From: Isurus oxyrinchus | Lineage: Eukaryota | Assembly: GCA_026770705.1 (NCBI GenBank) | Contig: JANJGN010001648.1 | Span: 1 to 64,000 of the forward strand | Length of the DNA: 64,000 nucleotides | Direction of reading: 5' to 3' | Part shown: positions 5,481-40,100 of the stretch, piece by piece | Layout of the letters: each line of letters begins with the position of its first letter | Position numbering within the stretch: position 1 is the first letter of the stretch | Program-made: the position numbers and the translations under genes | The notes under the pieces: generated by a model | Databases searched by the model: none | What the model was told of the DNA's origin: nothing | The model's input: only the letters and a program-made list of their open reading frames with translations

Positions 5481-5486
5481 ACAGCC

Positions 5487-7790: not shown

Positions 7791-7907
7791 AACAGGACAT
7801 TCAGCTCTCAGCCAATTTCTCTTGTATTAATTTGTATTAAAGTGCTTTTAAAGATGTGCGTGAGTGCCTTGTATATGGTGAGGACAGGGACAAACTGCAC
7901 TGGGGTT

Positions 7908-16454: not shown

Positions 16455-19400
16455 CAGAGTAAATATCGCTCTACACTGTCCCCATCAAACACTCCCAGGA
16501 CAGGTACAGCACAGGGTTAGATACAGAGTAAAGCTCCCTCTACACTGTCCCCATCAAACACTCCCAGGACAGGTACAGCACGGGGTTAGATACAGAGTAA
16601 ATCTCCCTCTACACTGTCCCCATCAAACACTCCCAGGACAGGTACAGCACGGGGTTAGATACAGAGTAAATCTCCCTCTACACTGTCCCCATCAAACACT
16701 CCCAGGACAGGTACAGCACGGGGTTAGATACAGAGTAAATCTCCCTCTACACCGTCCCCATCAAACACTCCCAGGACAGGTACAGCACGGGGTTAGATAC
16801 AGAGTAAATCTCCCTCTACACCGTCCCCATCAAACACTCCCAGGACAGGTACAGCACGGGGTTAGATACAGAGTAAATCTCCCTCTACACTGTCCCCATC
16901 AAACACTCCCAGGACAGGTACAGCACGGTGTTACATACAGAGTAAATCTCCCTCTACACTGTCCCCATCAAACACTCCCAGGACAGGTACAGCACGGGGT
17001 TAGATACAGAGTAAATATCGCTCTACACTGTCCCCAACAAACACTGCCAGGACACATACAGCACGGGGTTAGATACAGAGTAAATCTCCCGCTACACTGT
17101 CCCCAACAAACACTCCCAGGACAGGTACAGCACGGGGTTCGATACAGAGTAAATCTCCCTCTACACTGTCCCCATCAAACACTCCCAGGACAGGTACAGC
17201 ACGGGGTTAGATACAGAGTAAATCTCCGTCTACACTGTCCCCATCAAACACACCCAGGACAGGTACAGCACGGGGTTAGATACAGAGTAAATCTCCGTCT
17301 ACACTGTCCCCATCAAACACTCCCAGGACAGGTACAGCACGGGGTTAGATACAGAGTAAAGCTCCATCTACACTGTCCCCATCAGACACTCACAGGACAG
17401 GTACAGCACAGGATTAGATACAGAGTAAATCTCCCTCTACACTGTCCCCATCAAACAATCCCAGGACAGGTACAGCAAGGTGTTAGATACAGAGTAAATC
17501 TCCCTCGACACTGTCCCCATCAAACACTCCCAGGATAGGTACAGCACGGGGTTAGATACAGAGTAAATCTCCATCTACACTGTCCCCATCAAACACTCCC
17601 AGGACACGTACAGCACGGGGTTAGATACAGAGTAAAGCTCCCTCTACACTGTCTCCATCCAACACTTCCAGGACAGGTACAGCACGGGGTTAGATACAGA
17701 GTAAATCTCCCTCTACACTGTCCCCATCAAACACTCCCAGGACAGGTACAGCACGGGGTTAGATACAGAGTAAATCTACCTCTACACTGTCCCCATCAAA
17801 CACTCCCAGGACAGGTACAGCACGGGGTTAGATACAGAGTAAATCTCCGTCTACACTGTCCCCATCAAACACTCCCAGGACAGGTACAGCACGGGGTTAG
17901 ATACAGAGTAAACCTCCATCTACACTGTCCCCATCAAACACTCCCAGGACAGGTACAGCACAGGATTAGATACAGAGTAAATCTCCCTCTACACTGTCCC
18001 CATCAGACACTCACAGGACAGGTACAGCACGGGGTTAGATACAGAGTAAATCTCCCTCTACACTGTCCCCATCAAACACTCCCAGGACAGGTACAGCACG
18101 GGGTTAGATACAGAGTAAATCTCCATCTACACTGTCCCCATCAAACACTCCCAGGACACGTACAGCACGGGGTTAGATACAGAGTAAAGCTCCCTCTACA
18201 CTGTCTCCATCCAACACTTCCAGGACAGGTACAGCACGGGGTTAGATACAGAATAAATCTCCCTCGACACTGTCCCCATCAAACACTCCCAGGACAGGTA
18301 CGGCACGGGGTTAGATACAGAGTAAATCTACCTCTACACTGTCCCCATCAAACACTCCCAGGACAGGTACAGCACGGGGTTAGATACAGAGTAAAGCACC
18401 CTCTACACTGTCCCCATCAAACACTCCCATGACAGGTACAGCACGGGGTTAGATACAGAGTAAATCTCCCTCTACATTGTCCCCATCAAATACTCCCAGG
18501 ACAGGTACAGAACAGAGTTAGATACAGAGTAATGCTCCCTCTACACTGTCCCCAAAAAACACTCCCAGGACAGGTACAGCACGGGGTTAGATACAGAGTA
18601 AATCTCCCTCTACACTGTCCCCATCAAACACTCCCAGGACAGGTACAGAACAGAGTTATATACAGAATAAATCTCCCTCTACACTGTCCCCATCAAACCC
18701 TCCCAGGACAGGTACAGCACAGGGTTAGATACAGAGTAAATCTCCCTTTACACTGCCCCATCAAACACTCCCAGGACAGGTACAGCACGGGGTTAGATAC
18801 AGAGTAAAGCTCCCCCTACAGTGTCCCCATCAAACACTCCCAGGACAGGTACAGCACGGGGTAAGATACAGAGTAAAGCTCCCCCTACAATGTCCCCATC
18901 AAACACTCCCAGGACAGGTACAGCACGGGTTTAGATACAGAGTAAAGCTCCCTCTACAGTGTCCCCATCAAACACTCCCAGGAGAGGTACAGCACAGTGT
19001 TAGATACAGAGTAAATCTCCCTCTACACTGTCACCTTCAAACACTCCCAGGACAGGTATAGCACCAGGTTAGATACAGAGTAAATCTCCCTCTACACTGT
19101 CCCCATCAAACACTCCCAGGACAGGTACAGCACGGGGTTAGATACAGAGTAAACCTCCCTCTACACTTTCCCCATCACACACTCGCAGGACAGGTACAGC
19201 ACAGAGTGAGATACAGAGTAAATCTCCCTCTACACTGTCCCCATCAAACACTCCCAGGACAGGTACAGCACGGGGTTAGATACAGAGTAAATCTCCCTCT
19301 ACACTGCCCCCATCAAACACTCCCAGGACAGGTACAGCACGGGGTTAGATACAGAGTAAATCTCCCTCTACACTGTCCCCATCAAACACTCCCAGGACAG

Positions 19401-22400
19401 GTACAGCACGGGGTTAGATACAGAATAAATCTCCCTCTACACTGTCCCCATCAAACACTCCCAGGACAGGTACAGCATGGGGTTAGATACAGAGTCAATC
19501 TCCCTCTACACTGACCACATCAAACACTCCCAGCACAGGTACAGCACGGGGTTAGATACAGAGTAAATCTCCCTCTACACTGACCACAGCAAACACTCCC
19601 AGGACAGGTACAGCACGGGGTTAGATACAGAGTAAATCTCCCTCTACACTGTCCCCATCAAACACTCCCAGGACAGGTACAGCACGGGGTTAGATACAGA
19701 GTAAATCTCCCTCTACACTGACCACAGCAAACACACCCAGGACAGGTACAGCACCGGGTTAGATACAGAGTAAAGCTCCCTCTACACTGTCCCCATCAAA
19801 CACTCCCAGGACAGGTACAGCACGGGGTTAGATACAGAGTAAATCTCCCTCTACACTGACCACATCAAACACTCCCAGCACAGGTACAGCACGGGGTTAG
19901 ATACAGAGTAAATCTCCCTCTACACTGACCACAGCAAACACTCCCAGGACAGGTACAGCACGGGGTTAGATACAGAGTAAATCTCCCTCTACACTGTCCC
20001 CATCAAACACTCCCAGGACAGGTACAGCACGGGGTTAGATACAGAGTAAATCTCCCTCTACACTGACCACAGCAAACACACCCAGGACAGGTACAGCACC
20101 GGGTTAGATACAGAGTAAATCTCCCTATACACTGTCCCCATCAAACACTCCCAGGACAGGTACAGCACGGGATTATATACAGAGTAAAGCTCCCTCTACA
20201 CTGTCCCCATCAAACACTCCCAGGACAGGGACAGCACGGGGTTAGATACAGAGTAAAGCTCCCTCTACACTGTACCCATCAAACACTCCCAGGACAGGTA
20301 CAGCACAGGGTTAGATACGGAGTAAATCTCCCTCTACACTGTCCCCATCAAACACTCCCAGGACAGGTACAGCACGGGGTTAGGTACACAGTAAATCTCC
20401 CTCTACACTGTCCCCATCAAACACTCCCAGGACAGGTACAGCACGGGGTTAGGTACACAGTAAATCTCCCTCTACACTGTCCCCATCAAACACTCCCAGG
20501 ACAGGTACAGCATGGGTTTAGATACAGAGTAAATCTCCCTCTACACTGTCCCCATCAAACACTCCCAGGACAGGTACAGCACGGGGTTAGATACAGAGTA
20601 AATCTCCCTCTACACTGTCCCCATCAAACACTCCCAGGACAGGTACAGCACGGGGTTAGATACAGAGTAAATCTCCCTCTACACTGTCCCCATCAAACAC
20701 TCCCAGGACAGGTACAGCACGGGGTTAGACACAGAGTAAATCTCCCTCTACACTGTCCCCATCAAACACTCCCAGGACAGGTACAGCACGGGGTTAGACA
20801 CAGAGTAAAGCTCCCTCTAAACTGTCCCCATCAAACACTCCCAGGACAGGTACAGCACGGGGTTAGACACAGAGTAAAGCTCCCTCTACACTGTCCCCAT
20901 CAAACACTCCCAGGACAGGTACAGCACGGGGTGAGATACAGAGTAAATCTCCCTCTACACTGTCCCCATCAAACACTCCCAGGACGGGTACAGCACGGGG
21001 TTAGATACAGAGTAAATCTCCCTCTACACTGTCCCCATCAAACACTCCCAGGACAGGTACAGCACGGGGTGAGATACAGAGTAAATCTCCCTCTACACTG
21101 TCCCCATCAAACACTCCCAGGACGGGTACAGCACGGGGTTAGATACAGAGTAAATCTCCCTCTACACTGTCCCCATCAAACACTCCCAGGACAGGTACAG
21201 CACGGGGTTAGATACAGAGTAAATCTCCCTCTACACTGTCCCCATCAAACACTCCCAGGACAGGTACAGCACGGGGTTAGATACAGAGTAAATCTCCCTC
21301 TACACTGTCCCCATCAAACACTCCCAGGACAGGTACAGCACGGGGTTAGATACAGAGTAAATCTCCCTCTACACTGTCCCCATCAAACATTCCCAGGACA
21401 GGTACAGCACAGGATTAGATACAGAGTAAATCTCCCTCTACACTGTCCCCATCAATCATTCCCAGGACAGGTACAGCATGGGTTTAGATACAGAGTAAAT
21501 CTCCCTCTACACTGTCCCCATCAAACACTCCCAGGACAGGTACAGCACGGGGTTAGATACAGAGTAAATCTCCCTCTACACTGTCCCCATCAAACACTCC
21601 CAGGACAGGTACAGCACGGAGTTAGATACAGAGTAAATCTCTCTCTACACTGTCCCCATCAAACACTCCCAGGACAGGTACAGCACAGGGTTAGATACAG
21701 AGTAAATCTCCCTCTACACTGTCCCCATCAAACACTCCCAGGACAGGTAAAGCACGGGGTTAGATACAGAGTAAATCTCCCTCTACACTGATCCCATCAA
21801 ACACTCCCAGGACAGGTAAAGCACGGGGTTTGATACAGTGTAAATCTCCCTCTACACTGTCCTCATCAAACACTCCCAGGACAGGTACAGCACGGGGTTA
21901 GATACAGAGTAAAGCTCCCTCTACACTGTCCCCATCAAACACTCCCAGGACAGGTACAGCACGGGGTTAGATACAGTGTAAATCTCTCTCTACACTGTCC
22001 CCATCAAACACTCCCAGGACAGGTACAGCACGGGGTTAGATACAGAGTAAATCTCCCTCTACACTGTCCCCATCAAACACTCCCAGGACAGGTACAGCAC
22101 GGGGTTAGATACAGAGTAAATCTCGCTCTACACTTTCCCAATCAAACATTCCCAGGACAGGTACAGCACGGGGTTAGATACAGAGTAAATCACCATCTCC
22201 ACTGTCCCCATCAAAGACGCCCAGGACAGGTACAGCATGGGGTTAGATACAGAGTAAATCTCCCTCTACACTGTCCCCATCAAACACTCCCAGGACAGGT
22301 ACAGCACGGGGTTAGATACAGAGTAAATCTCCCACTACACTGTCCACATCATACACTCCCAGGACAGGTACAGCACCAGGTTAGATACAGAGTAAATCTA

Positions 22401-24355
22401 CCTCTACACTGTCCCTAATAAACAATCCCAGGACAGGTACAGCACGGGGTTAGATACAGAGTAAATCTCCCTCTACACTGTCCCCATCAAACACTCCCAG
22501 GACAGGTACAGCACGGGGTTAGATACAGAGTAAATCTACCTCTACACTGTCCCTAATAAACAATCCCAGGACAGGTACAGCACGGGGTTAGATACAGAGT
22601 AAATCTACCTCTACACTGTCCCTAATAAACAATCCCAGGACAGGTACAGCACGGGGTTAGATACAGAGTAAATCTCCCTCTGCACTGACCCTAATAAACA
22701 CTCCCAGGACAGGTACAGCACGGGGTTAGATACAGAGTAAATCTCCCTCTACACTGTCCCTAATAAACAATCCCAGGACAGGTACAGCACGGGGTTAGAT
22801 ACAGAGTAAATCTCCCTCTGCACTGACCCTAATAAACACTCCCAGGACAGGTACAGCACGGGGTTAGATACAGAGTAAATCTCCCTCTACACTGCCCCAT
22901 CAAACACTCCCAGGACAGGTACAGCACGGGGTTAGATACAGAGTAAATCTACCTCTACACTGTCCCCATCAAACATTCCCAGGACAGGTACAGTACGGGG
23001 TTAGGTACAGAGTAAATCTCCCTTTACACTGTCCCCATCAAACACTCCCAGGACAGGTACAGCACGGGGTTAGATACAGAGTAAATCTACCTCTACACTG
23101 TCCCCATCAAACACTCCCAGGACAGGTACAGCACGGGGTTAGATACAGTGTAAATCTCCCTCTACACTGTCCCCATCAAACACTCCCAGAACAGGTACAG
23201 CACGGGGTTAGATACAGAGTAAATCTCCCTCTACACTGTCCCCATCAAACATTCCCAGGACAGGTACAGTACGGGGTTAGGTACAGAGTAAATCTCCCTT
23301 TACACTGTCCCCATCAAACACTCCCAGGACAGGTACAGCACGGGGTTAGATACAGAGTAAAGCTCCCTCTACACTGTCCCCATCAAACGCTCCCAGGACA
23401 GGTAGTGCACGGGGTTAGATACAGAGTAAATCTCCCTCTACACTGTCCCCATCAAACACTCCCAGGACAGGTACAGCACGGGGTTAGATACAGAGTAAAT
23501 CTCCCTCTACACTGTCCCCATCAAACACTCCCAGGACAGGTACAGCACGGGGTTAGATACAGAGTAAATCTCCCTCTACACTGTCCCCATCAAACACTCC
23601 CAGGACAGGTACAGCACGGGGTTAGATACAGAGTAAATCTCCCTCTACACTGTCCACATCAAATACTCCCAGGACAGGTACAGCACGGGGTTAGATACAG
23701 AGTAAATCTCCCTCTACACTGTCCCCATCAAACACTCCCAGGACAGGTACAGCACTGGGTTAGATACAGAGTAAAGCTCCCTCTCCACTGTCCCCATCAA
23801 TCACTCCCAGGACAGGTACAGCACGGGGTTAGATACAGAGTAAATCTCCCTCTACACTGTCCCCATCAAACACTCCCAGGACAGGTACATCACGGGGTTA
23901 GATACAGAGTAAATCTCCCTTTACACTGTCCCCAATAAACACTCCCAGGACAGGTACAGCACGGGGTTAGATACAGAGTAAAGCTCCCTCTACACTGTCC
24001 CCATCAAACACTCCCAGGACAGGTACAGCACGGGGTTAGATACAGAGTAAATCTCCCTCTACACTGTCCCCATCAAACACTCCCAGGACAGGTACAGCAC
24101 GGGGTTAGATACAGAGTAAATCTCCCTCTACACTGTCCACATCAAATACTCCCAGGACAGGTACAGCACGGGGTTAGATACAGAGTAATATCCCTCTACA
24201 CTGTCCCCATCAAACACTCCCAGGACAGGTACAGCACGGGGTTAGATACAGAGTAAATCTCCCTCTACACTGTCCCCATCAAACACTGCCAGGACAGGTA
24301 CAGCACGGGGTTAGATACAGAGTAAATCTCCCTCTACACTGACCACAGCAAACAC
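16455..24355. repeat. 69-bp tandem repeat array B, ~114 copies
   Basis: Same unit and orientation as array A, with local variant clusters (ctgaccacagc ~19500-20080; ccctaataaacaatc ~22410-22840). Confidence 0.98.
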
Positions 24356-24432
24356 ACAAAACAGTTTTTAAGAGCATTGCTCTCTTTAGGGTTTCAGGGA
24401 AATTAAGTCTTCATGTTTAAGTTTCTACTCAC

Positions 24433-24507
24433 TGGCATTTCCTTCCGAGATTCCACTTTCCCAGACTTCAGTTCATGGTAAACATCCTTCTGGTTACCTC
24501 GAATTTC
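24433..24507 (-). CDS. FCER1G: FCER1G-like cytoplasmic exon: EIRGNQKDVYHELKSGKVESRKEMP, completes ITAM YEEI-x7-YHEL
   Basis: Minus strand: catttttcag|GAAATTCGA...ATGCCA|gtgagt. 75 nt, phase 0-0, open. If the donor is not used, the frame continues VSRNLNMKT to TAA at 24403-24405. Confidence 0.85.
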
Positions 24508-24534
24508 CTGAAAAATGTACACAGTTTTTTGGCA

Positions 24535-25268
24535 TTAACCCTCTCACCCACCTCTCCCCATTTACACACAATGAGCAGCCTGTTCCCTATCGGAGGGGGA
24601 TTAACCCTCTCACCCACCTCTCCCCATTTACACACACCGGGCAGCCTGTTCCCTATCGGAGGGGGATTAACCCTCTCACCCACCTCTCCCCATTTACACA
24701 CACCGGGCAGCCTGTTCCCTAGTCGATGGGGATTAACCCTCTCACTCACCTCTCCCCATTTACACACACCGGGCAACCTGTTCCCTATTGGAGGGGGATG
24801 TACACTCTAACACACATCTCCACATTTACACACACCGGGCAGCCTGTTCCTTATCGGAGGGGGATTAACCCTCTCACCCACGTATCCCCATTTACACACA
24901 CCGGGCAGCCTGTTCCCCATCGGAGTGGGATTTAACCTCATACCAACCTCTCCCCTTTTACACACACTGGGCAGTCTGTTCCCTTTCGGAGTGGGATTAT
25001 CCCTCTCACCCACCTCTCCCCATTTACACACACCGGGCAGCCTGTTCCCTATCGGAGGGGGATTAACCCTCTCACCCACCTCTCCCCATTTACACACAAT
25101 GGGCAGCCTGTTCCCTATCGGAGGGGGATTAACCCTCTCACCCACCTCTCCCCATTTACACACAGCCTGTTCCCTATCGGAGGGGGATTAACCCTCTCAC
25201 CCACCTCTCCCCATTTACACACACCGGGCAGCCTGTTCCCTATCGGAGGGGGATTAACCCTCTCACCC
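24535..25268. repeat. 66-bp intronic minisatellite, ~11 copies
   Basis: Unit TTAACCCTCTCACCCACCTCTCCCCATTTACACACACCGGGCAGCCTGTTCCCTATCGGAGGGGGA. Confidence 0.97.
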
Positions 25269-25274
25269 AATGGT

Positions 25275-25476
25275 GCCTTCTCTCCTGGAGCAGGGGAGAT
25301 TGAGAGGGGATTCAATCAAGTTGTTTTAAAGGTGGGAGAGTTTCCATCGCTTGCAGGTGGAGAAGCGGTCCCCGGCGGTAGGAGGGTCGGTAACCAGAGG
25401 GTCACAGGTTGAGGAGAATCAGGGTAAAGGACCAGGAGGGCCCGACGAGGACCAGGGCAGATGTCTTCACCCAGCG
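25275..25476 (+). mobile_element. Old CR1 ORF2 C-terminal fragment
   Basis: Degenerate FSPGAGEIER/RLRGDSIK, GGSVTRG(H) and FTQR motifs. Confidence 0.6.
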
Positions 25477-25719
25477 TCAGACGTTACGTTGCACGGGGAG
25501 TGCGGATTTGAATTGAGGGGAGGGATGTTTGTATCTGGGACGTGGAGAGTGGTAGTATTGCTGCCGGTGACAGGCATTGGTCAGTTTCTTGCCTGTATCC
25601 CGATATTGGAACTTCGAGTCACCTCTACAACACAGAGTCCGAATCCTCGCACTCCCCCACCAAACCCTCCAACCCCTCCCCCCCCCACCCCCCCCAACAA
25701 AGCATCGGAATTTCCATAC

Positions 25720-25764
25720 CTCATACACGGAGGGTTGGCCAGAAGCTTTCTTACGCATCTGTAA
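25720..25764 (-). CDS. FCER1G: FCER1G-like cytoplasmic exon (exon 3 equivalent): LQMRKKASGQPSVYE, supplies the first ITAM tyrosine
   Basis: Minus strand: polypyrimidine tract cttttctttacaccttattcag|TTACAGATGCGT...GTGTATGAG|gtatgg. 45 nt, phase 0-0, open. Resembles human exon 3 IQVRKAAITSYE. Confidence 0.85.
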
Positions 25765-26007
25765 CTGAATAAGGTGTAAAGAAAAGAATGAGTCAAGGTC
25801 AGCGCGTGAGGCACAAACCCTCTCTCTCCTCCATCACTTCTCCGAACTCTTTTTCAAAAGACACACGTTCTCCGCCCCACCCCCACCCCCCACCCCCCCG
25901 TTGACCTAGTGGCTTCAAGCTGAGTCTTGGCAAACCTGCTCTGAATTATCTCCAAAATTAGGGGGTGCCCTCACTCCCAAACAGCGGAGAGCGTCTACTG
26001 AATCCCA

Positions 26008-27622
26008 CTGATGTTAACCCCTCTCCCCCCAGCACCCTGTGTTACTGACTGTATCTCTACTGATGTTAATCCAGCTCCCTCACACTGTCACTCAGTAAAC
26101 ACTCTCCCCCCAGCACCCTGTGTTACTGACTGTATATCTACTGATGTTAATCCAGCTCTCTCACACTGTCACTCAGTAACCCCTCTCCCCCAGCACCGTG
26201 TTACTGACTGTATCTCTACTGATGTTAATCCAGCTCCCTCACACTGTCACTCAGTAACCCCTCTCCCCCAGCACGCTGTGTTACTGACTGTATCTCTACT
26301 GATGTTAATCCAGCTCCCTCACACTGTCACTCAGTAACCCCTATCCCCCAGCACACTGTGTAACTGACTGTATCTCTACTGATGTTAATCCAACTCCCTC
26401 ACACTGTCACTCAGTAACCCCTCTCCCCCCAGCACCCTGTGTTACTGACTGTATCTCTACTGATGTTAATCCAGCTCCCTCGCACTGTCACTCAGTAACC
26501 CCTCTCCCCCAGCGCCCTGTGTTACTGACTGTATCTCTACTGATGTTAATCCAGCTCCCTCACACTGTCACTCAGTAACCCCTCTCTCCCCAGCACCCTG
26601 TGTTACTGACTGTATCTCTACTGATGTTAATCCAGCTCCCTCACACTGTCACTCAGTAACCCCTCTCCCCCCAGCTCCCTGTGTTACTGTCTGTATCTCT
26701 ACTGATGTTAATCCAGCTCCCTCACACTGTCACTCAGTAACCCATCTCCCCCCAGCACCCTGTGTTACTGTCTGTATCTCTACTGATGTTAATCCAGCTC
26801 CCTCACACTGTCACTCAGTAACCCCTCTCCCCCCAGCACCCTGTGTTACTGACTGTATCTCTACTGATGTTAATCCAGCTCCCTCACACTGTCACTCAGT
26901 AACCCCTCTCCCCCAGCACCCTGTGTTACTGACTGTATCTCTACTGATGTTAATCCAGCTCCCTCACACTGTCACTCAGTAACCCCTCTCCCCCAACACC
27001 CTGTGTTACTGACTGTATCTCTATTGATGTTAATCCAGATACCTCACACTGTCACTCAGTAACCCCTCTTCCGCCAGCAATCTGTGTTACTGACTGTATC
27101 TCTACTGATGTTAATCCAGATACCTCACACTGTCTCTCAGTAACCCCTCTCCCCCAACGCCCTGTGTTACTGACTGTATCTCTACTGATGTTAATCCAGC
27201 TCCCTCACACTGTCACTCAGTAACCTGTCTCCCCCCAGCACCCTGTGTTACTGACTGTATCTCTACTGATGTTAACCCAGCTCCCTCACACTGTCACTCA
27301 GTAAACCCTCTCCCCCAGCGCCCTGTGTTACTGACTGTATCTCTACTGATGTTAATCCAGCTCTCTCACACTGTCACTCAGTAACCCCTCTCCCCCCAGC
27401 ACCCTGTGTTACTGACTGTATCTCTACTGATGTTAATCCAGCTCTCTCACACTGTCACTCAGTAACCCCTCTCCCCCAGCGCCCTGTGTTACTGACTGTA
27501 TCTCTACTGATGTTAATCCAGCTCCCTCACACTGTCACTCAGTAACCCCTCTCCCCCCAGCACCCTGTGTTACTGACTGTATCTCTACTGATGTTAATCC
27601 AGCTCCCTCACTCAGTCACCCC
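26008..27622. repeat. 80-82-bp intronic minisatellite, ~20 copies
   Basis: Unit CTGATGTTAATCCAGCTCCCTCACACTGTCACTCAGTAACCCCTCTCCCCCCAGCACCCTGTGTTACTGACTGTATCTCTA. Confidence 0.97.
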
Positions 27623-27634
27623 TCTAGCCCTTAC

Positions 27635-27726
27635 CTTCAGGCGACAGTAGAGAGCAGTTAAAACAATTCCATAGACGAACAGGGCAGCATCCAAGACATA
27701 ACAGACTTCTGGTGGCTGGAGCGCTT
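27635..27726 (-). CDS. FCER1G: FcR-gamma (FCER1G)-like adaptor, exon with short ectodomain and transmembrane helix (exon 2 equivalent): xALQPPEVCYVLDAALFVYGIVLTALYCRLK
   Basis: Minus strand reads ...cccctctcccctaatccag|AAGCGCTCC...CGCCTGAAG|gtaagg. The exon is 92 nt, phase 1 to phase 0. The peptide matches the FcR-gamma TM signature (human [31 protein letters not shown]), including the dimerisation Cys, TM Asp and YCRLK. Confidence 0.93.
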
Positions 27727-27889
27727 CTGGATTAGGGGAGAGGGGAGTTATTAAGACAAGTTCCATTGCCTATTCAGCCCCAATGACAGTGCCTCCAGCA
27801 TCTCCTGGCCCCGCTCACAGCCTGCCCTGCCTTCTGGGATCGAGCCGAGTGTCTGGCTTTGCCCTATGAGAGGACAGATAATGCACACA

Positions 27890-28035
27890 CCACATCGCTG
27901 TGGGTCTGAATCAGTCCTGGGCCAGAGTCGAGTGCCAAGGCTCCTGACACTGGTGGATTCTAATAACTTACCACTCTGATCACCATCAGCACCACCGAGA
28001 ATACCTTTTCATTCCAGGTTGGGTGAATAAATTGT
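27890..28035 (-). mobile_element. Degraded SINE fragment, probably the same family as 2213-2344
   Basis: Reverse strand CTGGAATGAAAAG matches CTGGAATTAAAAG at 2332-2344. The remainder is assigned from recalled similarity only. Confidence 0.4.
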
Positions 28036-28199
28036 TCACGTTTGCGAGCATGGACAATTATACTCCTTGTGTCTCAGTCTCCCCCGGTCTCGCTCTCTCA
28101 CACTGGTTATCTGTCCTTCTCTCTCTCCCCTTCTCTCACTCTCTCTGACTCCTAGTTTCCGTCTCTCACAGTGTCACATTCAGCCTCATGCTCTGACTG

Positions 28200-31100
28200 T
28201 CCCCTTCTCTCTCTGTGTACATCTCTCCCTCTGTCACATTTTGCTCTCTCTGTGTACATCTCTCCCTCTGTCACATTTTACTCTCTCTGTGTACATCTCT
28301 CCCTCTCTCTCTGTCACCTTTTACTCTCTCTGTGTACATCTCTCCCTCTCTCTGTCACCTTTTACTCTCTGTGTACATCTCTCCCTCTCTCTCTGTCACC
28401 TTTTACTCTCTGTGTACATCTCTCCCTCTCTCTGTCACCTTTTACTCTCTCTGTACATCTCTCCCTCTCTCTGTCACCTTTTACTCTCTCTGTACATCTC
28501 TCCCTCTCTCTCTCTGTCACCTTTTACTATCTCTCTGTGTACATCTCTCCCTTTCTCTGTTACAGTTTACTCTCTCTCAGTGTACATCTCTTCCTCTCTC
28601 TGTCACCTTTTACTCTCTCTGTGTACATCTCACTCTCTCTCTGTCACCTTTTACTCTCTGTGTACATCTCTCCCTCTCTCTGTCACCTTTTACTCTCTCT
28701 GCACATCTCTCCCTCTCTCTGTCACCTTTTACTCTCTGTGTACATCTCTCCCTCTCTCTCTCTGCCACCTTTTACTCTCTCTGTACATCTCTCCCTCTCT
28801 CTCTCTGTCACCTTTTACTCTCTCTCTGTGTACATCTCTCCCTCTCTCTGTTACAGTTTACTCTCTCTCTGTGTACATCTCTCCCTCTCTCTGTCACCTT
28901 TTACTCTCTGTGTACATCCCTCCCTCTCTTTGTCACCTTTTACTCTCTCTCTGTGTACATCTCTCCCTCTCTCTGTTACAGTTTACTCTCTCTCTGTGTA
29001 CATCTCTCCCTCTCTCTGTTACAGTTTACTCTCTCTGTGTACATCTCTTCCTCTCTCTGTCACCTTTTACTCTCTCTCTGTGTACATCTCTTCCTCTCTC
29101 TGTCACCTTTTACTCTCTCTGTGTACATCTCTCCCTCTCTCTGTCACCTTTTACTCTCTCTCTGTACATCTCTCCCTCTCTCTGTCACCTTTTACTCTCT
29201 CTGTGTAAATCTCTCTCTCTCTCTGTCACCTTTTACTCTCTGTGTACATCTCTCCCTCTCTCTCTCTGTCACCTTTTACTCTCTCTGTACATCTCTCCCT
29301 CTCTCTCTCTGTCACATTTTACTCTCACTCTGTGTACATCTCTCCCTCTCTCTGTTACAGTTTACTCTCTCTCTGTGTGCATCTCTCCCTCTCTCTGTTA
29401 CAGTTTACTCTCTCTCTGTGTACATCTCTCCCTCTCTCTGTTACAGTTTACTCTCTCTCTGTGTACATCTCTCCCTCTCTCTCTGTCACCTTTTACTCTC
29501 TGTGTACATCTCTCCCTCTCTCTGTCACCTTTTACTCTTTCTCTGTGTACATCTCTCCCTCTCTCTCTCTGTCACCTTTTACTCTCTCTGTGTACATCTC
29601 TCCCTCTCTCTGTCACCTTTTACTCTCTCTGTGTACATCTCTCCCTCTCTCTCTCTGTCACCTTTTACTCTCTGTGTACATCTCTCTCTCTCTCTGTCAC
29701 CTTTTACGCTCTCAGTGTACATCTCTCCCTGTCTCTCTCTGTCACCTTTTACTCTCTGTGTACATCTCTCCCTCTCTCTGTCACCTTTTACTCTCTCTGT
29801 ACATCTCTCCCTCTCTCTCTCTGTCACCTTTTACTCTCTCTGTGTACATCTCTCCCTCACTCTGTCACCTTTTACTCTCTCTGTGTACATCTCTCCCTCT
29901 CTCTGTCACCTTATACTCTCTCTGTGTACATCTCTCCCTCTCTCTCTCTGTCACCTTTTACTCTCTGTGTACATCTCTCCCTCTCTCTCTCTGTCACCTT
30001 TTACTCTCTGTGTACATCTCTCCCTCTCTCTGTCACCTTTTACTCTCTCTGTACATCTCTCCCTCTCTCTGTCATCTTTTACTCTCTCTCTCTGTGTACA
30101 TCTCTCCCTCTCTCTGTCACCTTTTACTCTCTCTCTGTGTACATCTCTCCCTCTCTCTCTGTCACCTTTTACTCTCTCTGTGTACATCTTTCCCTCTCTC
30201 TCTCTGTCACCTTTGACTCTCTGTGTACATCTCTCCCTCTCTCTCTCTGTCACCCTTTACTCTCTTTGTGTACATCTCTCCCTCTCTCTCTCTGTCACAT
30301 TTTAGTCTCTCTGTGTACATCTCTCCCTCTCTCTCTCCCTGTCACCTTTTACTCTCTCTCTGTGTACATCTCTGCCTCTCTCTCTCTCTGTCACCTTTAA
30401 CTCTCTGTGTACATCTCTCCCTCTCTCTCTCTGTCACATTTTACTCTCTCTCTGTGTACATCTCTCCCTCTCTCTGTTACAGTTTACTCTCTCTCTGTGT
30501 ACATCTCTCCCTCTCTCTGTCACCTTTTACTCTTTCTCTGTGTACATCTCTCCCTCTCTCTCTCTGTCACCTTTTACTCTCTCTGTGTACATCTCTCTCT
30601 CTCTCTCTGTCACCTTTTACGCTCTCAGTGTACATCTCTCCCTGTCTCTCTCTGTCACCTTTTACTCTCTGTGTACATCTCTCCCTCTCTCTGTCACCTT
30701 TTACTCTCTGTGTACATCTCTCCCTCTCTCTCTCTGTAACCTTTTACTCTCTCTGTGTACATCGCTCCCTCTCTCTCTCTGTCACCTTTTACTCTCTGTG
30801 TACATCTCTCCCTCACTCTGTCACCTTTTACTCTCTGTGTGTACATCTCTCCCTCTCTCTGTCACCTTATACTCTCTCTGTGTACATCTCTCCCTCTCTC
30901 TCTCTGTCACCTTTTACTCTCTGTGTACATCTCTCCCTCTCTCTCTCTGTCACCTTTTACTCTCTGTGTACATCTCTCCCTCTCTCTCTGTCACCTTTTA
31001 CTCTCTGTGTAGATCTCTCCCTCTCTCTCTCTGTCACCTTTTACTCTCTGTGTACATCTCTCCCTCTCTCTGTCACCTTTTACTCTCTCTGCACATCTCT

Positions 31101-34100
31101 CCCTCTCTCTGTCACCTTATACTCTCTCTGTGTACATCTCTCCCTCTCTCTCTCTGTCACCTTTTACTCTCTCTGTGTACATCGCTCCCTCTCTCGCTCT
31201 GTCACCTTTTACTCTCTTTGTGTACATCTCTCCCTCTCTCTCTCTGTCACCTTTTACTCTCTCTCTGTGTACATCTCTCCCTCTCTCTCTCTGTCACATT
31301 TTACTCTCTCTGTGTACATCTCTCTCTCTCTCTCTCCCTGTCACCTTTTACTCTCTCTCTGTGTACATCTCTCCCTCTCTCTCTCTGTCACCTTTTACTC
31401 TCTGTGTACATCTCTCCCTCTCTCTCTCTGTCACCTTATACTCTCTGTGTACATCTCTCCCTCTCTCTGTCACCTTTTACTCTCTGTTTACATCTCTCCT
31501 TCTCTCTGTCACCTTTTACTCTCTGTGTACATCTCTCCCTCTCTCTGTCACCTTTTACTCTCTCTCTGTACATCTCTCCCTCTCTCTCTCTGTCACCTTT
31601 TACTCACTCTGTGTACATCTCTCCCTCTCTCTGTCACCTTTTACTCTCTCTCTGTACATCTCTCCCTCTCTCTCTCTGTCACCTTTTACTCTCTCTGTGT
31701 ACATCTCTCCTTCTCTCTCTCTGTCACCTTTTACTCTCTGTGTACATCTCTCCCTCTCTCTGTCACCTTTTACTCTCTGTTTACATCTCTCCCTCTCTCT
31801 GTCACCTTTTACTCTCTCTCTGTGTACATCTCTCCCTCTCTCTCTCTGTCACCTTTTACTCTCTGTGTACATCTCTCCCTCTCTCTGTCACCTTTTACTC
31901 TCTGTTTACATCTCTACCTCTCTCTGTCACCTTTTACTCTCTCTGTGTACATCTCTCCCTCTCTCTCTCTGTCACCTTTTACTCTCTCTGTGTACATCTC
32001 TCCCTCTCTCTCTCTGTCACCTTTTACTCTCTCTGTGTACATCTCTCCCTCTCTCTCTCTCTGTCACTTTTTACTCTCTCTCTGTGTACATCTCTCCCTC
32101 TCTATCACTGTCACCTTTTACTCTCTCTCTGTGTACATCTCTCCCTCTCTCTCTCTGTCACCTTTTACTCTCTGTGTGTACATCTCTCCCTCTCACTCTG
32201 TCACCTTTTATTCACTCTCTGTGTACATCTCTCCCTCTCTCTCTCTGTCACCTTTTACTCTCTGTGTACATCTCTCCCTCTCTCTGTCACCTTTTACTCT
32301 CTGTGTACATCTCTCCCTCTCTCTCTCTGTCACCTTTTACTCTCTCTGTGTACATCTCTCCCTCTCTCTCTCTGTCACCTTTTACTCTCTCTGTGTACAT
32401 CTCTCCCTCTCTCTCTCTGTCACCTTTTACTCTCTCTGTGTACATCTCTCCCTCTCTCTCTCTCTGTCACTTTTTACTCTCTCTCTGTGTACATCTCTCC
32501 CTCTCTATCACTGTCACCTTTTACTCTCTCTCTGTGTACATCTCTCCCTCTCTCTCTCTGTCACCTTTTACTCTCTGTGTGTACATCTCTCCCTCTCACT
32601 CTGTCACCTTTTATTCACTCTCTGTGTACATCTCTCCCTCTCTCTCTCTGTCACCTTTTACTCTCTGTGTACATCTCTCCCTCTCTCTCTCTGTCACCTT
32701 TTACTCTCTCTGTGTACATCCCTCTCTCTCTCTCTCTGTCACCTTTTACTCTCTGTGTACATCCCTCCCTCTCTCTCTCTGTCACATTTTACTCTCTCTG
32801 TGTACATCTCTCTCTCTCTCTCTCCCTGTCACCTTTTACTCTCTCTCTGTGTACATCTCTCCCTCTCTCTCTCTGTCACCTTTTACTCTCTGTGTACATC
32901 TCTCCCTCTCTCTCTCTGTCACCTTATACTCTCTGTGTACATCTCTCCCTCTCTCTGTCACCTTTTACTCTCTGTTTACATCTCTCCCTCTCTCTGTCAC
33001 CTTTTACTCTCTGTGTACATCTCTCCCTCTCTCTGTCACCTTTTACTCTCTCTGTGTACATCTCTCCCTCTCTCTCTCTGTCACCTTTTACTCTCTGTGT
33101 ACATCTCTCCCTCTCTCTCTCTGTCACCTTTTACTCACTCTGTGTACATCTCTCCCTCTCTCTGTCACCTTTTACTCTCTCTCTGTACATCTCTCCCTCT
33201 CTCTCTCTGTCACCTTTTACTCTCTCTGTGTACATCTCTCCTTCTCTCTCTCTGTCACCTTTTACTCTCTGTGTACATCTCTCCCTCTCTCTGTCACCTT
33301 TTACTCTCTGTGTACATCTCTCCCTCTCTCTGTCACCTTTTACTTTCTGTGTACATCTCTCCCTCTCTCTGTCACCTTTTACTCTCTCTCTGTGTACATC
33401 TCTCCCTCTCTCTGTCACCTTTTACTCTCTCTGTGTACATCTCTCCCTCTCTCTCTCTGTCACCTTTTACTGTCTCTGTGTACATCTCTCCCTCTCTCTC
33501 TGTCACCTTTTACTCTCTCTGTGTACATCTCTCCCTCTCTCTCTCTCTGTCACTTTTTACTCTCTCTCTGTGTACATCTCTCCCTCTCTATCTCTGTCAC
33601 CTTTTACTCTCTTTCTGTTTACATCTCTCCCTCTCTCTCTCTGTCACCTTTTACTCTCTGTGTGTACATCTCTCCCTCTCACTCTGTCACCTTTTATTCA
33701 CTCTCTGTGTACATCTCTCCCTCTCTCTCTCTGTCACCTTTTACTCTCTGTGTACATCTCTCCCTCTCTCTGTCACCTTTTACTCTCTGTGTACATCTCT
33801 CCCTCTCTCTCTCTGTCACCTTTTACTCTCTGTGTACATCTCTCCCTCTCTCTCTCTGTCACCTTTTACTCTCTCTGTGTACATCCCTCTCTCTCTCTCT
33901 GTCACCTTTTACTCTCTGTGTACATCCCTCCCTCTCTCTCTCTGTCACCTTTTACTCTCTGTGTACATCTCTCCCTCTCTCTCTCTGTCACCTTTTACTC
34001 TCTGTGTACATCTCTCCCTCTCTCTCTCTGTCACCTTATACTCTCTGTGTACATCTCTCCCTCTCTCTGTCACCTTTTACTCTCTGTTTACATCTCTCCC

Positions 34101-37100
34101 TCTCTCTGTCACCTTTTACTCTCTGTGTACATCTCTCCCTCTCTCTGTCACCTATTACTCTCTCTGTGTACATCTCTCCCTCTCTCTCCCTGTCACCTTT
34201 TACTCTCTGTGTACATCTCTCCCTCTCTCTCTCTGTCACCTTTTACTCACTCTGTGTACATCTCTCCCTCTCTCTGTCACCTTTTAATCTCTCTCTGTAC
34301 ATCTCTCCCTCTCTCTCTCTGTCACCTTTTACTCTCTCTGTGTACATCTCTCCTTCTCTCTGTCACCTTTTACTCTCTGTGTACATCTCTCCCTCTCTCT
34401 GTCACCTTTTACTCTCTCTCTGTACATCTCTCCCTCTCTCTCTCTGTCACCTTTTACTCACTCTGTGTACATCTCTCCCTCTCTCTGTCACCTTTTACTC
34501 TCTCTCTGTACATCTCTCCCTCTCTCTCTCTGTCACCTTTTACTCTCTCTGTGTACATCTCTCCTTCTCTCTCTCTGTCACCTTTTACTCTCTGTGTACA
34601 TCTCTCCCTCTCTCTGTCACCTTTTACTCTCTGTTTACATCTCTCCCTCTCTCTGTCACCTTTTACTCTCTCTCTGTGTACATCTCTCCCTCTCTCTCTC
34701 TGTCACCTTTTACTCTCTGTGTACATCTCTCCCTCTCTCTGTCACCTTTTACTCTCTGTTTACATCTCTACCTCTCTCTGTCACCTTTTACTCTCTCTGT
34801 GTACATCTCTCCCTCTCTCTCTCTGTCACCTTTTACTCTCTCTGTGTACATCTCTCCCTCTCTCTCTCTCTGTCACTTTTTACTCTCTCTCTGTGTACAT
34901 CTCTCCCTCTCTATCACTGTCACCTTTTACTCTCTCTCTGTGTACATCTCTCCCTCTCTCTCTCTGTCACCTTTTACTCTCTGTGTGTACATCTCTCCCT
35001 CTCACTCTGTCACCTTTTATTCACTCTCTGTGTACATCTCTCCCTCTCTCTCTCTGTCACCTTTTACTCTCTGTGTACATCTCTCCCTCTCTCTGTCACC
35101 TTTTACTCTCTGTGTACATCTCTCCCTCTCTCTCTCTGTCACCTTTTACTCTCTCTGTGTACATCTCTCCCTCTCTCTCTCTGTCACCTTTTACTCTCTC
35201 TGTGTACATCTCTCCCTCTCTCTCTCTGTCACCTTTTACTCTCTCTGTGTACATCTCTCCCTCTCTCTCTCTCTGTCACTTTTTACTCTCTCTCTGTGTA
35301 CATCTCTCCCTCTCTATCACTGTCACCTTTTACTCTCTCTCTGTGTACATCTCTCCCTCTCTCTCTCTGTCACCTTTTACTCACTGTGTGTACATCTCTC
35401 CCTCTCACTCTGTCACCTTTTATTCACTCTCTGTGTACATCTCTCCCTCTCTCTCTCTGTCACCTTTTACTCTCTGTGTACATCTCTCCCTCTCTCTCTC
35501 TGTCACCTTTTACTCTCTCTGTGTACATCCCTCTCTCTCTCTCTCTGTCACCTTTTACTCTCTGTGTACATCCCTCCCTCTCTCTCTCTGTCACATTTTA
35601 CTCTCTCTGTGTACATCTCTCTCTCTCTCTCTCCCTGTCACCTTTTACTCTCTCTCTGTGTACATCTCTCCCTCTCTCTCTCTGTCACCTTTTACTCTCT
35701 GTGTACATCTCTCCCTCTCTCTCTCTGTCACCTTATACTCTCTGTGTACATCTCTCCCTCTCTCTGTCACCTTTTACTCTCTGTTTACATCTCTCCCTCT
35801 CTCTGTCACCTTTTACTCTCTGTGTACATCTCTCCCTCTCTCTGTCACCTTTTACTCTCTCTGTGTACATCTCTCCCTCTCTCTCTCTGTCACCTTTTAC
35901 TCTCTGTGTACATCTCTCCCTCTCTCTCTCTGTCACCTTTTACTCACTCTGTGTACATCTCTCCCTCTCTCTGTCACCTTTTACTCTCTCTCTGTACATC
36001 TCTCCCTCTCTCTCTCTGTCACCTTTTACTCTCTCTGTGTACATCTCTCCTTCTCTCTCTCTGTCACCTTTTACTCTCTGTGTACATCTCTCCCTCTCTC
36101 TGTCACCTTTTACTCTCTGTGTACATCTCTCCCTCTCTCTGTCACCTTTTACTTTCTGTGTACATCTCTCCCTCTCTCTGTCACCTTTTACTCTCTCTCT
36201 GTGTACATCTCTCCCTCTCTCTGTCACCTTTTACTCTCTCTGTGTACATCTCTCCCTCTCTCTCTCTGTCACCTTTTACTGTCTCTGTGTACATCTCTCC
36301 CTCTCTCTCTGTCACCTTTTACTCTCTCTGTGTACATCTCTCCCTCTCTCTCTCTCTGTCACTTTTTACTCTCTCTCTGTGTACATCTCTCCCTCTCTAT
36401 CTCTGTCACCTTTTACTCTCTTTCTGTTTACATCTCTCCCTCTCTCTCTCTGTCACCTTTTACTCTCTGTGTGTACATCTCTCCCTCTCACTCTGTCACC
36501 TTTTATTCACTCTCTGTGTACATCTCTCCCTCTCTCTCTCTGTCACCTTTTACTCTCTGTGTACATCTCTCCCTCTCTCTGTCACCTTTTACTCTCTGTG
36601 TACATCTCTCCCTCTCTCTCTCTGTCACCTTTTACTCTCTGTGTACATCTCTCCCTCTCTCTCTCTGTCACCTTTTACTCTCTCTGTGTACATCCCTCTC
36701 TCTCTCTCTGTCACCTTTTACTCTCTGTGTACATCCCTCCCTCTCTCTCTCTGTCACCTTTTACTCTCTGTGTACATCTCTCCCTCTCTCTCTCTGTCAC
36801 CTTTTACTCTCTGTGTACATCTCTCCCTCTCTCTCTCTGTCACCTTATACTCTCTGTGTACATCTCTCCCTCTCTCTGTCACCTTTTACTCTCTGTTTAC
36901 ATCTCTCCCTCTCTCTGTCACCTTTTACTCTCTGTGTACATCTCTCCCTCTCTCTGTCACCTTTTAATCTCTCTGTGTACATCTCTCCCTCTCTCTCCCT
37001 GTCACCTTTTACTCTCTGTGTACATCTCTCCCTCTCTCTCTCTGTCACCTTTTACTCACTCTGTGTACATCTCTCCCTCTCTCTGTCACCTTTTAATCTC

Positions 37101-40100
37101 TCTCTGTACATCTCTCCCTCTCTCTCTCTGTCACCTTTTACTCTCTCTGTGTACATCTCTCCTTCTCTCTCTCTGTCACCTTTTACTCTCTGTGTACATC
37201 TCTCCCTCTCTCTGTCACATTTTACTCTCTGTTTACATCTCTCCCTCTCTCTGTCACCTTTTACTCTCTCTCTGTGTACATCTCTCCCTCTCTCTGTCAC
37301 CTTTTACTCTCTCTGTGTACATCTCTCCCTCTCTCTCTCTGTCACCTTTTACTCTCTCTGTGTACATCTCTCCCTCTCTCTCTCTGTCACCTTTTACTCT
37401 CTCTGTGTACATCTCTCCTTCTCTCTCTCTGTCACCTTTTACTCTCTGTGTACATCTCTCCCTCTCTCTGTCACATTTTACTCTCTGTTTACATCTCTCC
37501 CTCTCTCTGTCACCTTTTACTCTCTCTCTGTGTACATCTCTCCCTCTCTCTGTCACCTTTTACTCTCTCTGTGTACATCTCTCCCTCTCTCTCTCTGTCA
37601 CCTTTTACTCTCTCTGTGTACATCTCTCCCTCTCTCTCTCTGTCACCTTTTACTCTCTCTGTGTACATCTCTCCCTCTCTCTCTCTCTGTCACTTTTTAC
37701 TCTCTCTCTGTGTACATCTCTCCCTCTCTATCACTGTCACCTTTTACTCTCTCTCTGTGTACATCTCTCCCTCTCTCTCTCTGTCACCTTTTACTCTCTG
37801 TGTGTACATCTCTCCCTCTCACTCTGTCACCTTTTATTCACTCTCTGTGTACATCTCTCCCTCTCTCTCTCTTTCACCTTTTACTCTCTGTGTACATCTC
37901 TCCCTCACTCTGTCACCTTTTACTCTCTGTGTACATCTCTCCCTCTCTCTCTCTGTCACCTTTTACTCTCTCTGTGTACATCCCTCTCTCTCTCTCTCTG
38001 TCACATTTTACTCTCTCTGTGTACATCTCTCTCTCTCTCTCTCCCTGTCACCTTTTACTCTCTCTCTGTGTACATCTCTCCCTCTCTCTCTCTGTCACCT
38101 TTTACTCTCTGTGTACATCTCTCCCTCTCTCTCTCTGTCACCTTATACTCTCTGTGTACATCTCTCCCTCTCTCTGTCACCTTTTACTCTCTGTTTACAT
38201 CTCTCCCTCTCTCTGTCACCTTTTACTCTCTGTGTACATCTCTCCCTCTCTCTGTCACCTTTAACTCTCTCTGTGTACATCTCTCCCTCTCTCTCTCTGT
38301 CACCATTTACTCTCTGTGTACATCTCTCCCTCTCTCTCTCTGTCACCTTTTACTCACTCTGTGTACATCTCTCCATCTCTCTGTCACCTTTTACTCTCTC
38401 TCTGTATATCTCTCCCTCTCTCTCTCTGTCACCTTTTACTCTCTCTGTGTACATCTCTCCTTCTCTCTCTCTGTCACCTTTTACTCTCTGTGTACATCTC
38501 TCCCTCTCTCTGTCACCTTTTACTCTCTGTTTACATCTCTCCCTCTCTCTGTCACCTTTTACTCTCTCTCTGTGTACATCTCTCCCTCTCTCTGTCACCT
38601 TTTACTCTCTCTGTGTACATCTCTCCCTCTCTCTCTCTGTCACCTTTTACTGTCTCTGTGTACATCTCTCCCTCTCTCTCTCTGTCACCTTTTACTCTCT
38701 CTGTGTACATCTCTCCCTCTCTCTCTCTCTGTCACTTTTTACTCTCTCTCTGTGTACATCTCTCCCTCTCTATCTCTGTCACCTTTTACTTCCTCTCTGT
38801 GTACATCTCTCCCTCTCTCTCTCTGTCACCTTTTACTCTCTGTGTGTACATCTCTCCCTCTCACTCTGTCACCTTTTATTCACTCTCTGTGTACATCTCT
38901 CCCTCTCTCTCTCTGTCACCTTTTACTCTCTGTGTACATCTCTCCCTCTCTCTGTCACCTTTTACTCTCTGTGTACATCTCTCCCTCTCTCTCTCTGTCA
39001 CCTTTTACTCTCTGTGTACATCTCTCCCTCTCTCTCTCTGTCACCTTATACTCTCTGTGTACATCTCTCCCTCTCTCTGTCACCTTTTACTCTCTGATTA
39101 CATCTCTCCCTCTCTCTGTCACCTTTTACTCTCTGTGTACATCTCTCCCTCTCTCTGTCACCTTTTACTCTCTCTGTGTACATCTCTCCCTCTCTCTCTC
39201 TGCCACCTTTTACTCTCTGTGTACATCTCTCCCTCTCTCTCTCTGTCACCTTTTACTCTCTCTGTGTACATCTCTCCCTCTCTCTCTCTGTCACCTTTTA
39301 CTGTCTCTGTGTACATCACTCCCTCTCTCTCTCTGTCACCTTTTACTCTCTGTGTACATATCTCCCTCTCTCTCTCTGTCACCTTTTACTCTCTCTGTAC
39401 ATCTCTCCCTCTCTCTCTCTGTCACCTTTTACTCTCCGTGTACATCTCTCCCTCTCTCTGTCACCTTTTACTCTCTCTCTGTGTACATCTCTCCCTCTCT
39501 CTGTCACCTTTTACTCTCTCTGTGTACATCTCTCCCTCTCTCTCTCTGTCACCTTTTACTGTCTCTGTGTACATCTCTCCCTCTCTCTCTCTGTCACCTT
39601 TTACTCTCTCTGTGTACATCTCTCCCTCTCTCTCTCTCTGTCACTTTTTACTCTCTCTCTGTGTACATCTCTCCCTCTCTATCTCTGTCACCTTTTACTC
39701 TCTCTCTGTGTACATCTCTCCCTCTCTCTCTCTGTCACCTTTTACTCTCTGTGTGTACATCTCTCCCTCTCACTCTGTCACCATTTATTCACTCTCTGTG
39801 TACATCTCTCCCTCTCTCTCTCTGTCACCTTTTACTCTCTGTGTACATCTCTCCCTCTCTCTGTCACCTTTTACTCTCTGTGTACATCTCTCCCTCTCTC
39901 TCTCTCTGTCACCTTTTACTCTCTGTGTACATCTCTCCCTCTCTCTCTGTTACCTTTTACTCTCTCTCTGTACATCTCTCCCTCTCTCTCTCTGTCACCT
40001 TTTACTCTCTGTGTACATCTCTCCCTCTCTCTGTCACCTTTTACTCTCTGTTTACATCTCTTCCTCTCTCTGTCACCTTTTACTCTCTCTCTGTGTACAT

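Follow-up and report, generated by a model that had tools for sequence, protein, structure and literature searches.

Exons in satellite-rich DNA of the shark Isurus oxyrinchus probably belong to an FCER1G orthologue encoding two immunoreceptor tyrosine-based activation motifs

The Fc-receptor common gamma chain (FcR-gamma, the product of FCER1G) is a small disulphide-linked transmembrane adaptor and the signalling chain common to many activating immune receptors. According to the available portions of one study, the FcR-gamma genes of mammals and teleosts consist of five exons and both genes of Xenopus laevis of six, the six-exon Xenopus form carrying two ITAMs (immunoreceptor tyrosine-based activation motifs) and being termed unique there (PMC4536121, Guselnikov et al. 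2015). FcR-gamma has furthermore been stated, in the accessible parts of two papers, to be absent from cartilaginous fish and to have arisen with bony fish (PMC4016189, 2014; PMC5742104, 2017). Here, a stretch of 64,000 nucleotides from the shark Isurus oxyrinchus (assembly GCA_026770705.1, contig JANJGN010001648.1, positions 1 to 64,000 of the forward strand; hereafter the window) was analysed for an FcR-gamma gene whose exons lie dispersed among satellite arrays. The window is concluded, with a probability of roughly 0.9, to hold exons 2, 3 and 4 of a shark FCER1G orthologue that encodes a chain with two ITAMs.

All FCER1G exons in the window lie on the minus strand, and three of them are directly readable. 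These exons and the region adjoining the last of them are as follows, with the evidence in brackets; P0131 is the annotated FCER1G-like protein of Carcharodon carcharias (116 amino acids (aa)).

27635..27726, minus strand: exon 2, the short extracellular stalk plus the transmembrane segment (PF11628, contigs, identity to P0131)
25720..25764, minus strand: exon 3, 45 nt, phase 0 on both sides, encoding LQMRKKASGQPSVYE (translation, RNA joints, identity to P0131)
24433..24507, minus strand: exon 4, a 75-nt cassette, phase 0 on both sides, encoding EIRGNQKDVYHELKSGKVESRKEMP (translation, contigs, identity to P0131)
24431..24432, minus strand: GT of the splice donor CCA/GTGAGT after exon 4 (contigs end at 24433)
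24403..24432, minus strand: start of intron 4, which would read through as VSRNLNMKT followed by TAA (translation; crossed by no contig)

The first 2 nt of exon 2 belong to a split codon; its 30 full codons (27724-27635) include the conserved cysteine and the membrane aspartate. The last codons of exon 3 encode Y-E, the first half of an extra ITAM, while exon 4 supplies its second half plus a linker. The donors of exons 2, 3 and 4 read AAG/GTAAGG, GAG/GTATGG and CCA/GTGAGT, respectively, and the acceptors are all of the polypyrimidine/AG type, that of exon 2 being ...TCCAG. If the donor of exon 4 were ignored, the frame would continue for ten codons (PVSRNLNMKT) to a TAA at 24405-24403. An alternative AG was also found 6 nt inside exon 3 (25758-25764, TTACAG/ATG), use of which would drop L-Q in frame; the contigs take the upstream site at 25764.

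Assignment to the family was based on the protein encoded by these exons. Exon 2 matched Pfam PF11628, the zeta/gamma transmembrane family, with an E value of 2.4e-15 (56.4 bits), and C25, D29 and 15 further columns were invariant across 24 aligned family members. A word-based protein search with the open frame of the transmembrane exon (52 aa) returned no candidate, and a HMMER scan with the 30 codons of exon 2 against 1.84 billion representatives returned 129 matches at E<=0.001, with P0001 at the top (118 aa; 97% identity across exon 2). The source names checked among the 129 were all FcR-gamma, gamma-like or ITAM-bearing subunit, and a zeta-like three-ITAM tail was found in none of the 129 representatives. 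A further word search seeded with P0001 yielded 34 named proteins, with one such protein per shark species. For P0131, identity was 30/30 residues in exon 2, 15/15 in exon 3 and 24/25 in exon 4, that is, 69 of 70 in total, which is far beyond chance. After ...KEMP, P0131 continues with the seven residues KEEGIYT, which match a 21-nt micro-exon, and then with GLDGRQLDTYESLQPQKFSKPE, which contains the canonical FcR-gamma ITAM (GL...TYESL); thus the second shark ITAM, YTGL-x7-YESL, is the canonical one. Among PDB sequences, P0131 matched the FcR-gamma chains of Fc-epsilon-RI complexes at 64-67.5 bits (E about 1e-17) and CD3-zeta at 51 bits (E about 1e-12), with the list otherwise made up of weak noise matches, and the canonical mammalian FcR-gamma ITAM aligned onto the second shark ITAM. 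The resemblance to DAP12 or CD3-epsilon suggested by the initial annotation, which had been made from the DNA letters without database searches, obtained no measurable support: exon 4 alone had 0 matches among PDB sequences at E<=10, and P0131 matched no CD3-epsilon or DAP12 chain at the same threshold.

A maximum-likelihood tree was computed from 39 named family proteins over 94 columns, with the columns of the cassette left out because they were filled in under half of the rows. In this tree all FcR-gamma proteins, including 10 chondrichthyan rows, were split from two teleost fcer1g-like proteins at 100/98. The chondrichthyans formed one group in 78% of bootstrap trees and the backbone was otherwise unresolved (17 of 36 inner branches open), so that a count of 3 trait changes on the tree is uninformative. 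The gene is an FCER1G orthologue, neither a lineage-specific paralogue nor a gamma/zeta hybrid. Both of these had been put forward in the initial annotation. The former fails on a build that amphibians and 11 of 12 chondrichthyan proteins share and on the single protein per shark species; of the latter there survives the numerical sense, as two ITAMs stand between the one of mammalian FcR-gamma and the three of CD3-zeta.

Splicing of the locus was examined in sequencing runs. A total of 11 small runs, guessed to be RNA, hold from 5 to 10% of the words of 24360-25800, and contigs of four of them were aligned to 24300-28250: X1 and X2 from one sample, X3 from a different sample and study, and X6 from another organism. 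The runs are of small size, with contigs amounting to 58-160 million letters, and these contigs are unable to reveal rare isoforms. In three of the four runs, representing two samples and two studies, exons 4, 3 and 2 were joined in one contig each (738 nt in X1, 367 nt in X2 and 763 nt in X3, with depths of 309, 450 and 31, respectively), whereas X6 gave satellite matches only. The joint 24506/7->25719/20 skips 1212 nt and the joint 25764->27635 skips 1870 nt; both are CT..AC on the plus strand and thus GT..AG on the strand of the gene. The coordinates, peptides and intron phases originally drawn for the exons agree with these joints. At exon 2, contig coverage extended over 27635-27729, and the pieces at 24433-24506 had 0 other letters in X1 and X3, as had X3 in exon 2.

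The contigs also carry sequence from beyond both ends of the three exons. At the 3′ side the pieces end precisely with the final base of exon 4 (24433), and no contig of X1, X2 or X3 covers 24356-24432; X1 and X3 go on for 378 nt that were not placed on 24300-24432, while X2 goes on for 8 nt, the reverse complement of which starts with codons for K-E, as in the KEEGIYT of P0131. Since the contigs stop at 24433 and then continue off the adjacent intron, the donor of exon 4 is in use, and the 'extra donor' of the initial annotation is therefore real. Its statement that there is no micro-exon is contradicted by the same continuations and by P0131, in which both KEEGIYT and the canonical ITAM follow. 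The canonical C-terminal ITAM (YTGL-x7-YE[ST]L) is thus present in P0131, and for the window the RNA shows only the 378-nt continuation and the 8 letters that give K-E. At the 5′ side there is a contig overhang of 144 nt upstream of exon 2, whose last 30 letters translate to LVFLLQVIP, equal to residues 7-15 of P0131, which supports a signal-peptide exon joined via a phase-1 intron. With up to 3 mismatches allowed, the end of this overhang matched nowhere in the window. Moreover, depth was zero in two unique intronic bins (27732-27995) in all four runs, beside about 30-450 in the spliced contigs, which argues for RNA rather than genomic DNA. An isoform lacking exon 4 was not found among the joints listed, which is no evidence of its absence.

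The remaining exons were searched for in the window itself. Exons 5 and 6 were absent from 1-24432, both by tblastn with five two-ITAM proteins and by minus-strand regular expressions describing peptides that resemble GIYT and TYE[ST]L; these searches returned chance matches of satellite origin only. A scan below 28300 for a complete ITAM within one frame gave a single match, which is on the plus strand and holds a stop codon, and neither AATAAA nor ATTAAA occurs within 233 nt past the donor of exon 4. The 64-kb window contains neither exon 1 nor the 21-nt micro-exon nor the last exon.

Several points weigh against a two-ITAM FCER1G orthologue. (i) The micro-exon, the last exon and exon 1 are missing from the DNA of the window and are represented by the RNA contigs (8 downstream letters) and by the protein of another species. 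(ii) The runs were assigned to RNA by guess, and the flag on X3 reads 'probably DNA'. (iii) The tree contains no zeta or DAP12 rows, zeta having been compared via PDB alignments only. (iv) For the extra motif, Pfam PF02189 (ITAM) reports only the C-terminal ITAM in six two-ITAM proteins, at 12.8-27.1 bits (cut-off 22.2), and the extra motif in none of the six; in sharks even the canonical ITAM scores under that cut-off. (v) The residue three positions before the first tyrosine of the extra motif is not D, E or N, unlike the classical consensus as given in the available part of PMC4536121. (vi) A function of the extra motif as an ITAM is a prediction from its sequence.

Against these points stand the near-identity to P0131 and the spliced contigs, and three other explanations were weighed on the same evidence. 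The exons could be a partial or dead duplicate (exons 2-4) stranded in satellite DNA, with the RNA coming from a complete copy elsewhere: exons 1, 5 and 6 are absent from the 64 kb, and contigs are unable to separate near-identical copies. This appears improbable, as satellite-swollen introns account equally well for the missing exons, the three exons are open with intact AG/GT sites, no other letters were found for X3 in exons 2 and 4 or for X1 in exon 4, and protein databases hold one such protein per shark species. Alternatively, the spliced contigs could represent a processed retrocopy in genomic DNA, in which case splicing of the locus would not be demonstrated; the guessed run kinds and the flag on X3 would allow this. 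Yet the zero depth in 27732-27995 beside a contig depth of 30-450 is a misfit with DNA runs of a depth at which a single-copy retrocopy would assemble, and runs of this small size make the explanation barely credible.

The explanation closest to the initial annotation is that of a lineage-specific paralogue or FcR-gamma/zeta intermediate that bears the divergent ITAM only, lacks the micro-exon and has a message that may end at the TAA at 24403. The micro-exon and the canonical ITAM are indeed not in the window, an in-frame stop lies 10 codons past the donor, and the Bombina protein P0009 ends just past the cassette, so that a minor isoform with the first ITAM only is conceivable. All three spliced contigs, however, exit at the donor and none runs over 24356-24432; the overhang has codons for K-E, matching KEEGIYT; a protein with both ITAMs is identical in 69 of 70 residues; the 233 nt after the donor hold no poly(A) signal; and the build is common to 11 of 12 chondrichthyan proteins, with one protein per shark species. 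We therefore consider this explanation very unlikely. Of the two findings that together would have refuted the initial annotation in its own terms, a structure common to chondrichthyan orthologues was borne out, and a complementary DNA (cDNA) ending at TAA 24403 was not. An exon 2-4 fragment of a complete, expressed two-ITAM FCER1G orthologue is thus the reading retained here.

The extra motif, YEEI-x7-YHEL, is membrane-proximal, and its first tyrosine module is split between YE and EI by a phase-0 intron (border 25720/24507, confirmed by RNA). It fits the minimal ITAM consensus YxxL/I-x6-8-YxxL/I in both tyrosine modules and in spacing; Pfam PF02189 had no match to exon 4 alone. The initial annotation was right in that a divergent ITAM-like motif absent from mammalian FcR-gamma is present here.

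The distribution of the cassette was determined in 12 chondrichthyan FcR-gamma proteins from 12 species, namely Scyliorhinus canicula, S. torazame, Mustelus asterias, Carcharodon, Stegostoma, Hemiscyllium, Rhincodon, Narcine, Mobula, Hypanus, Leucoraja and the chimaera Callorhinchus. The cassette was found in 11 of the 12; the twelfth, isoform X2 of S. torazame, lacks precisely the cassette segment, with ...YE joined to QEEGIYT. The pattern Y..[LIV]-x7-Y..[LIV] is retained in the extra motif of 9 of the 11 cassette-bearing chondrichthyan proteins, the exceptions being in the first module (YEQM in Narcine and YGIE in Callorhinchus). The same arrangement was found in the caecilians Microcaecilia and Geotrypetes and the frogs Bombina, Aquarana and Rana, and isoform X2 of Geotrypetes skips precisely 25 residues. 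In alignment A1, exon 4 corresponds to columns 88-112, exactly what the annotated one-ITAM skip isoforms P0141 and P0134 (one from a catshark, one from a caecilian) lack. One-ITAM proteins were found in coelacanth, lungfish, sturgeon, teleosts, reptiles, birds and monotremes, and in many of those from lobe-finned fish and tetrapods the membrane-proximal exon terminates in Y-E or a near variant.

The amphibians compared here were the five genera named above, and Xenopus sequences were not among them. Among the two-ITAM rows of A1, 8 of 10 from chondrichthyans and 3 of 4 from amphibians have a cassette of 25 residues. When these 8 chondrichthyan and 3 amphibian cassettes were compared over 22 non-core positions (the three core ITAM positions being excluded), the mean BLOSUM62 sum was 8.0, as compared with −8.4 (sd 5.3) in 20,000 position shuffles (P value=0.0024), a difference to which general ITAM composition may contribute in part. 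This similarity supports common descent of the chondrichthyan and amphibian cassettes but is no proof of it, because residues beside ITAM tyrosines are generally biased.

Several individual proteins depart from the general pattern. In Bombina bombina, P0009 and P0162 share a 90% cluster; the form of 117 aa carries both ITAMs, and the 89-aa 'gamma-like' form stops three residues past the cassette, thus being a chain with the first ITAM only, the type of product that the initial annotation had imagined. The FcR-gamma of Crotalus tigris (P0092) is without the ..G[IV]YT micro-exon segment, its exon-3 end ..LYE being joined directly to ELKDQQSHPYDTL, and its only ITAM therefore seems to take the exon-3 Y-E as its first half; a colubrid protein (P0041) has the usual ..IYE/KVEGIYT/GL. 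In Rhincodon typus, P0135 reads ..KEEGIYT and then VRVVTIQ... with 50 more residues. As V-R fits a GT[AG]AG donor, this model is most likely an annotation error that runs into the intron after the micro-exon.

A working of the chain can be proposed from what is known of the family, which is partly restated in PMC4536121. The dimer would be disulphide-linked via the cysteine ahead of the membrane segment, and the membrane aspartate would pair it with activating receptors that bear a basic residue in their own membrane segment. After clustering of the receptors, Src-family kinases would phosphorylate the ITAM tyrosines, on which Syk-family kinases would then dock with their tandem SH2 domains. 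A dimer of chains with two ITAMs each would offer four docking sites, versus two in mammals. As exon 4 is 75 nt long and in phase 0 on both sides, its skipping keeps the frame and yields a one-ITAM chain.

Judged from the protein comparisons, the two-ITAM build of FcR-gamma is probably old among jawed vertebrates. A more far-reaching proposal, for and against which we see the balance as about even, joins these observations as follows: (i) a six-exon, two-ITAM FcR-gamma would be ancestral to jawed vertebrates and have been kept in chimaeras, sharks, rays and amphibians; (ii) in coelacanth, lungfish, reptiles and some mammals, the Y-E that closes exon 3 would be a relic, the first half of the lost ITAM; (iii) FcR-gamma and CD3-zeta would both derive from a multi-ITAM adaptor; (iv) the cassette would let cells switch between one and two ITAMs by splicing. 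If the ancestral state is as proposed, two printed claims would be overturned, namely that FcR-gamma is missing from cartilaginous fish and that Xenopus alone has the second ITAM.

The DNA between and around the exons consists largely of satellite arrays, with tandem repeat making up well over half of the window. The arrays (all from Tandem Repeats Finder, without strand) and two retroelement fragments are as follows.

28223..63996: 43-bp satellite array spanning at least 35.8 kb of intron 1, with 839 copies and 87% matches
26015..27619: 81-bp satellite array, 20 copies, most of intron 2
24534..25269: 66-bp satellite array, 11.3 copies, most of intron 3
16455..24355: 69-bp satellite array, 114.6 copies, from 78 nt into intron 4
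5485-7796: second array of the 69-bp satellite, 33.5 copies, downstream of exon 4
7908-8374, 8600-9976, 10502-11190 and 12240-15110: arrays of 19, 31, 66 and 56 bp, respectively, between the two 69-bp arrays
15360-15971, minus strand: fragment of a reverse transcriptase (PF00078, E 3.1e-13), in the long intron that follows exon 4
1643-1840, plus strand: integrase zinc-binding domain fragment (PF17921, E 2.8e-06), inside the same intron

The 43-bp array starts about 500 nt upstream of exon 2 and reaches the end of the window, with exon 1 lying beyond it; its strand asymmetry is extreme (GC skew about −0.69, AT skew about −0.63). From exon 4 to the missing micro-exon the distance is >24 kb. The gene is very long solely because its introns are filled with satellite arrays. 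For annotation the lesson is that tiny exons (45, 75 and 21 nt) with tens of kilobases of satellite between them can hide a complete gene.

Sharks possess FcR-gamma and express it, and the shark proteins together with the spliced contigs contradict the absence claimed in the accessible parts of PMC4016189 and PMC5742104. Specialists will find in this less a surprise than a useful correction; automatic annotation lists these proteins already. No paper on chondrichthyan FcR-gamma or its second ITAM was found in the literature searched, which is no proof of absence, since most subscription journals and supplements were beyond its scope. With a cassette common to amphibians and chondrichthyans, the 'Xenopus oddity' becomes a testable hypothesis of an ancestral adaptor with repeated ITAM loss.

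Compared with the known systems, the teleost FcR-gamma-like protein (fcer1gl) is a small adaptor of the same family with one ITAM; it differs from the shark chain in lying beyond the 100/98 branch and in a transmembrane segment that reads ...DGILIVYG.... CD3-zeta (CD247) shares with the shark chain the transmembrane family PF11628 and the presence of several ITAMs per chain, and HMMER places shark residues 52-111 (ITAM1-ITAM2) on ITAMs 2-3 of human zeta (102-160) with a 2-residue gap only. Homology of the shark tail to that of zeta was rejected, as this colinear alignment is non-significant on its own (12.5 bits, i-Evalue 1). Unlike the shark chain, zeta carries three ITAMs in a tail of ~110 residues, versus two in the 69-residue tail of P0131, and its match to P0131 is weaker than that of FcR-gamma (51 versus 67 bits). 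Mammalian FCER1G is like the shark gene in its transmembrane region, where residues 7-54 align with the chains of Fc-epsilon-RI complexes at 52-55 bits, and in a membrane-proximal exon that opens with [LI]Q[MV]RK; it is unlike it in having five exons, no 75-nt cassette and one ITAM. In the Xenopus FcR-gamma, as described in the available portions of PMC4536121, an extra exon between the membrane-proximal and the canonical ITAM exons gives the second ITAM, the extra ITAM is split across two exons inside its first tyrosine module, and the same type of transmembrane segment and the canonical C-terminal ITAM are present, all as in the shark. The cassette, called unique to Xenopus, is found here across chondrichthyans, its length being 25 codons in sharks, skates/rays, caecilians and Bombina.

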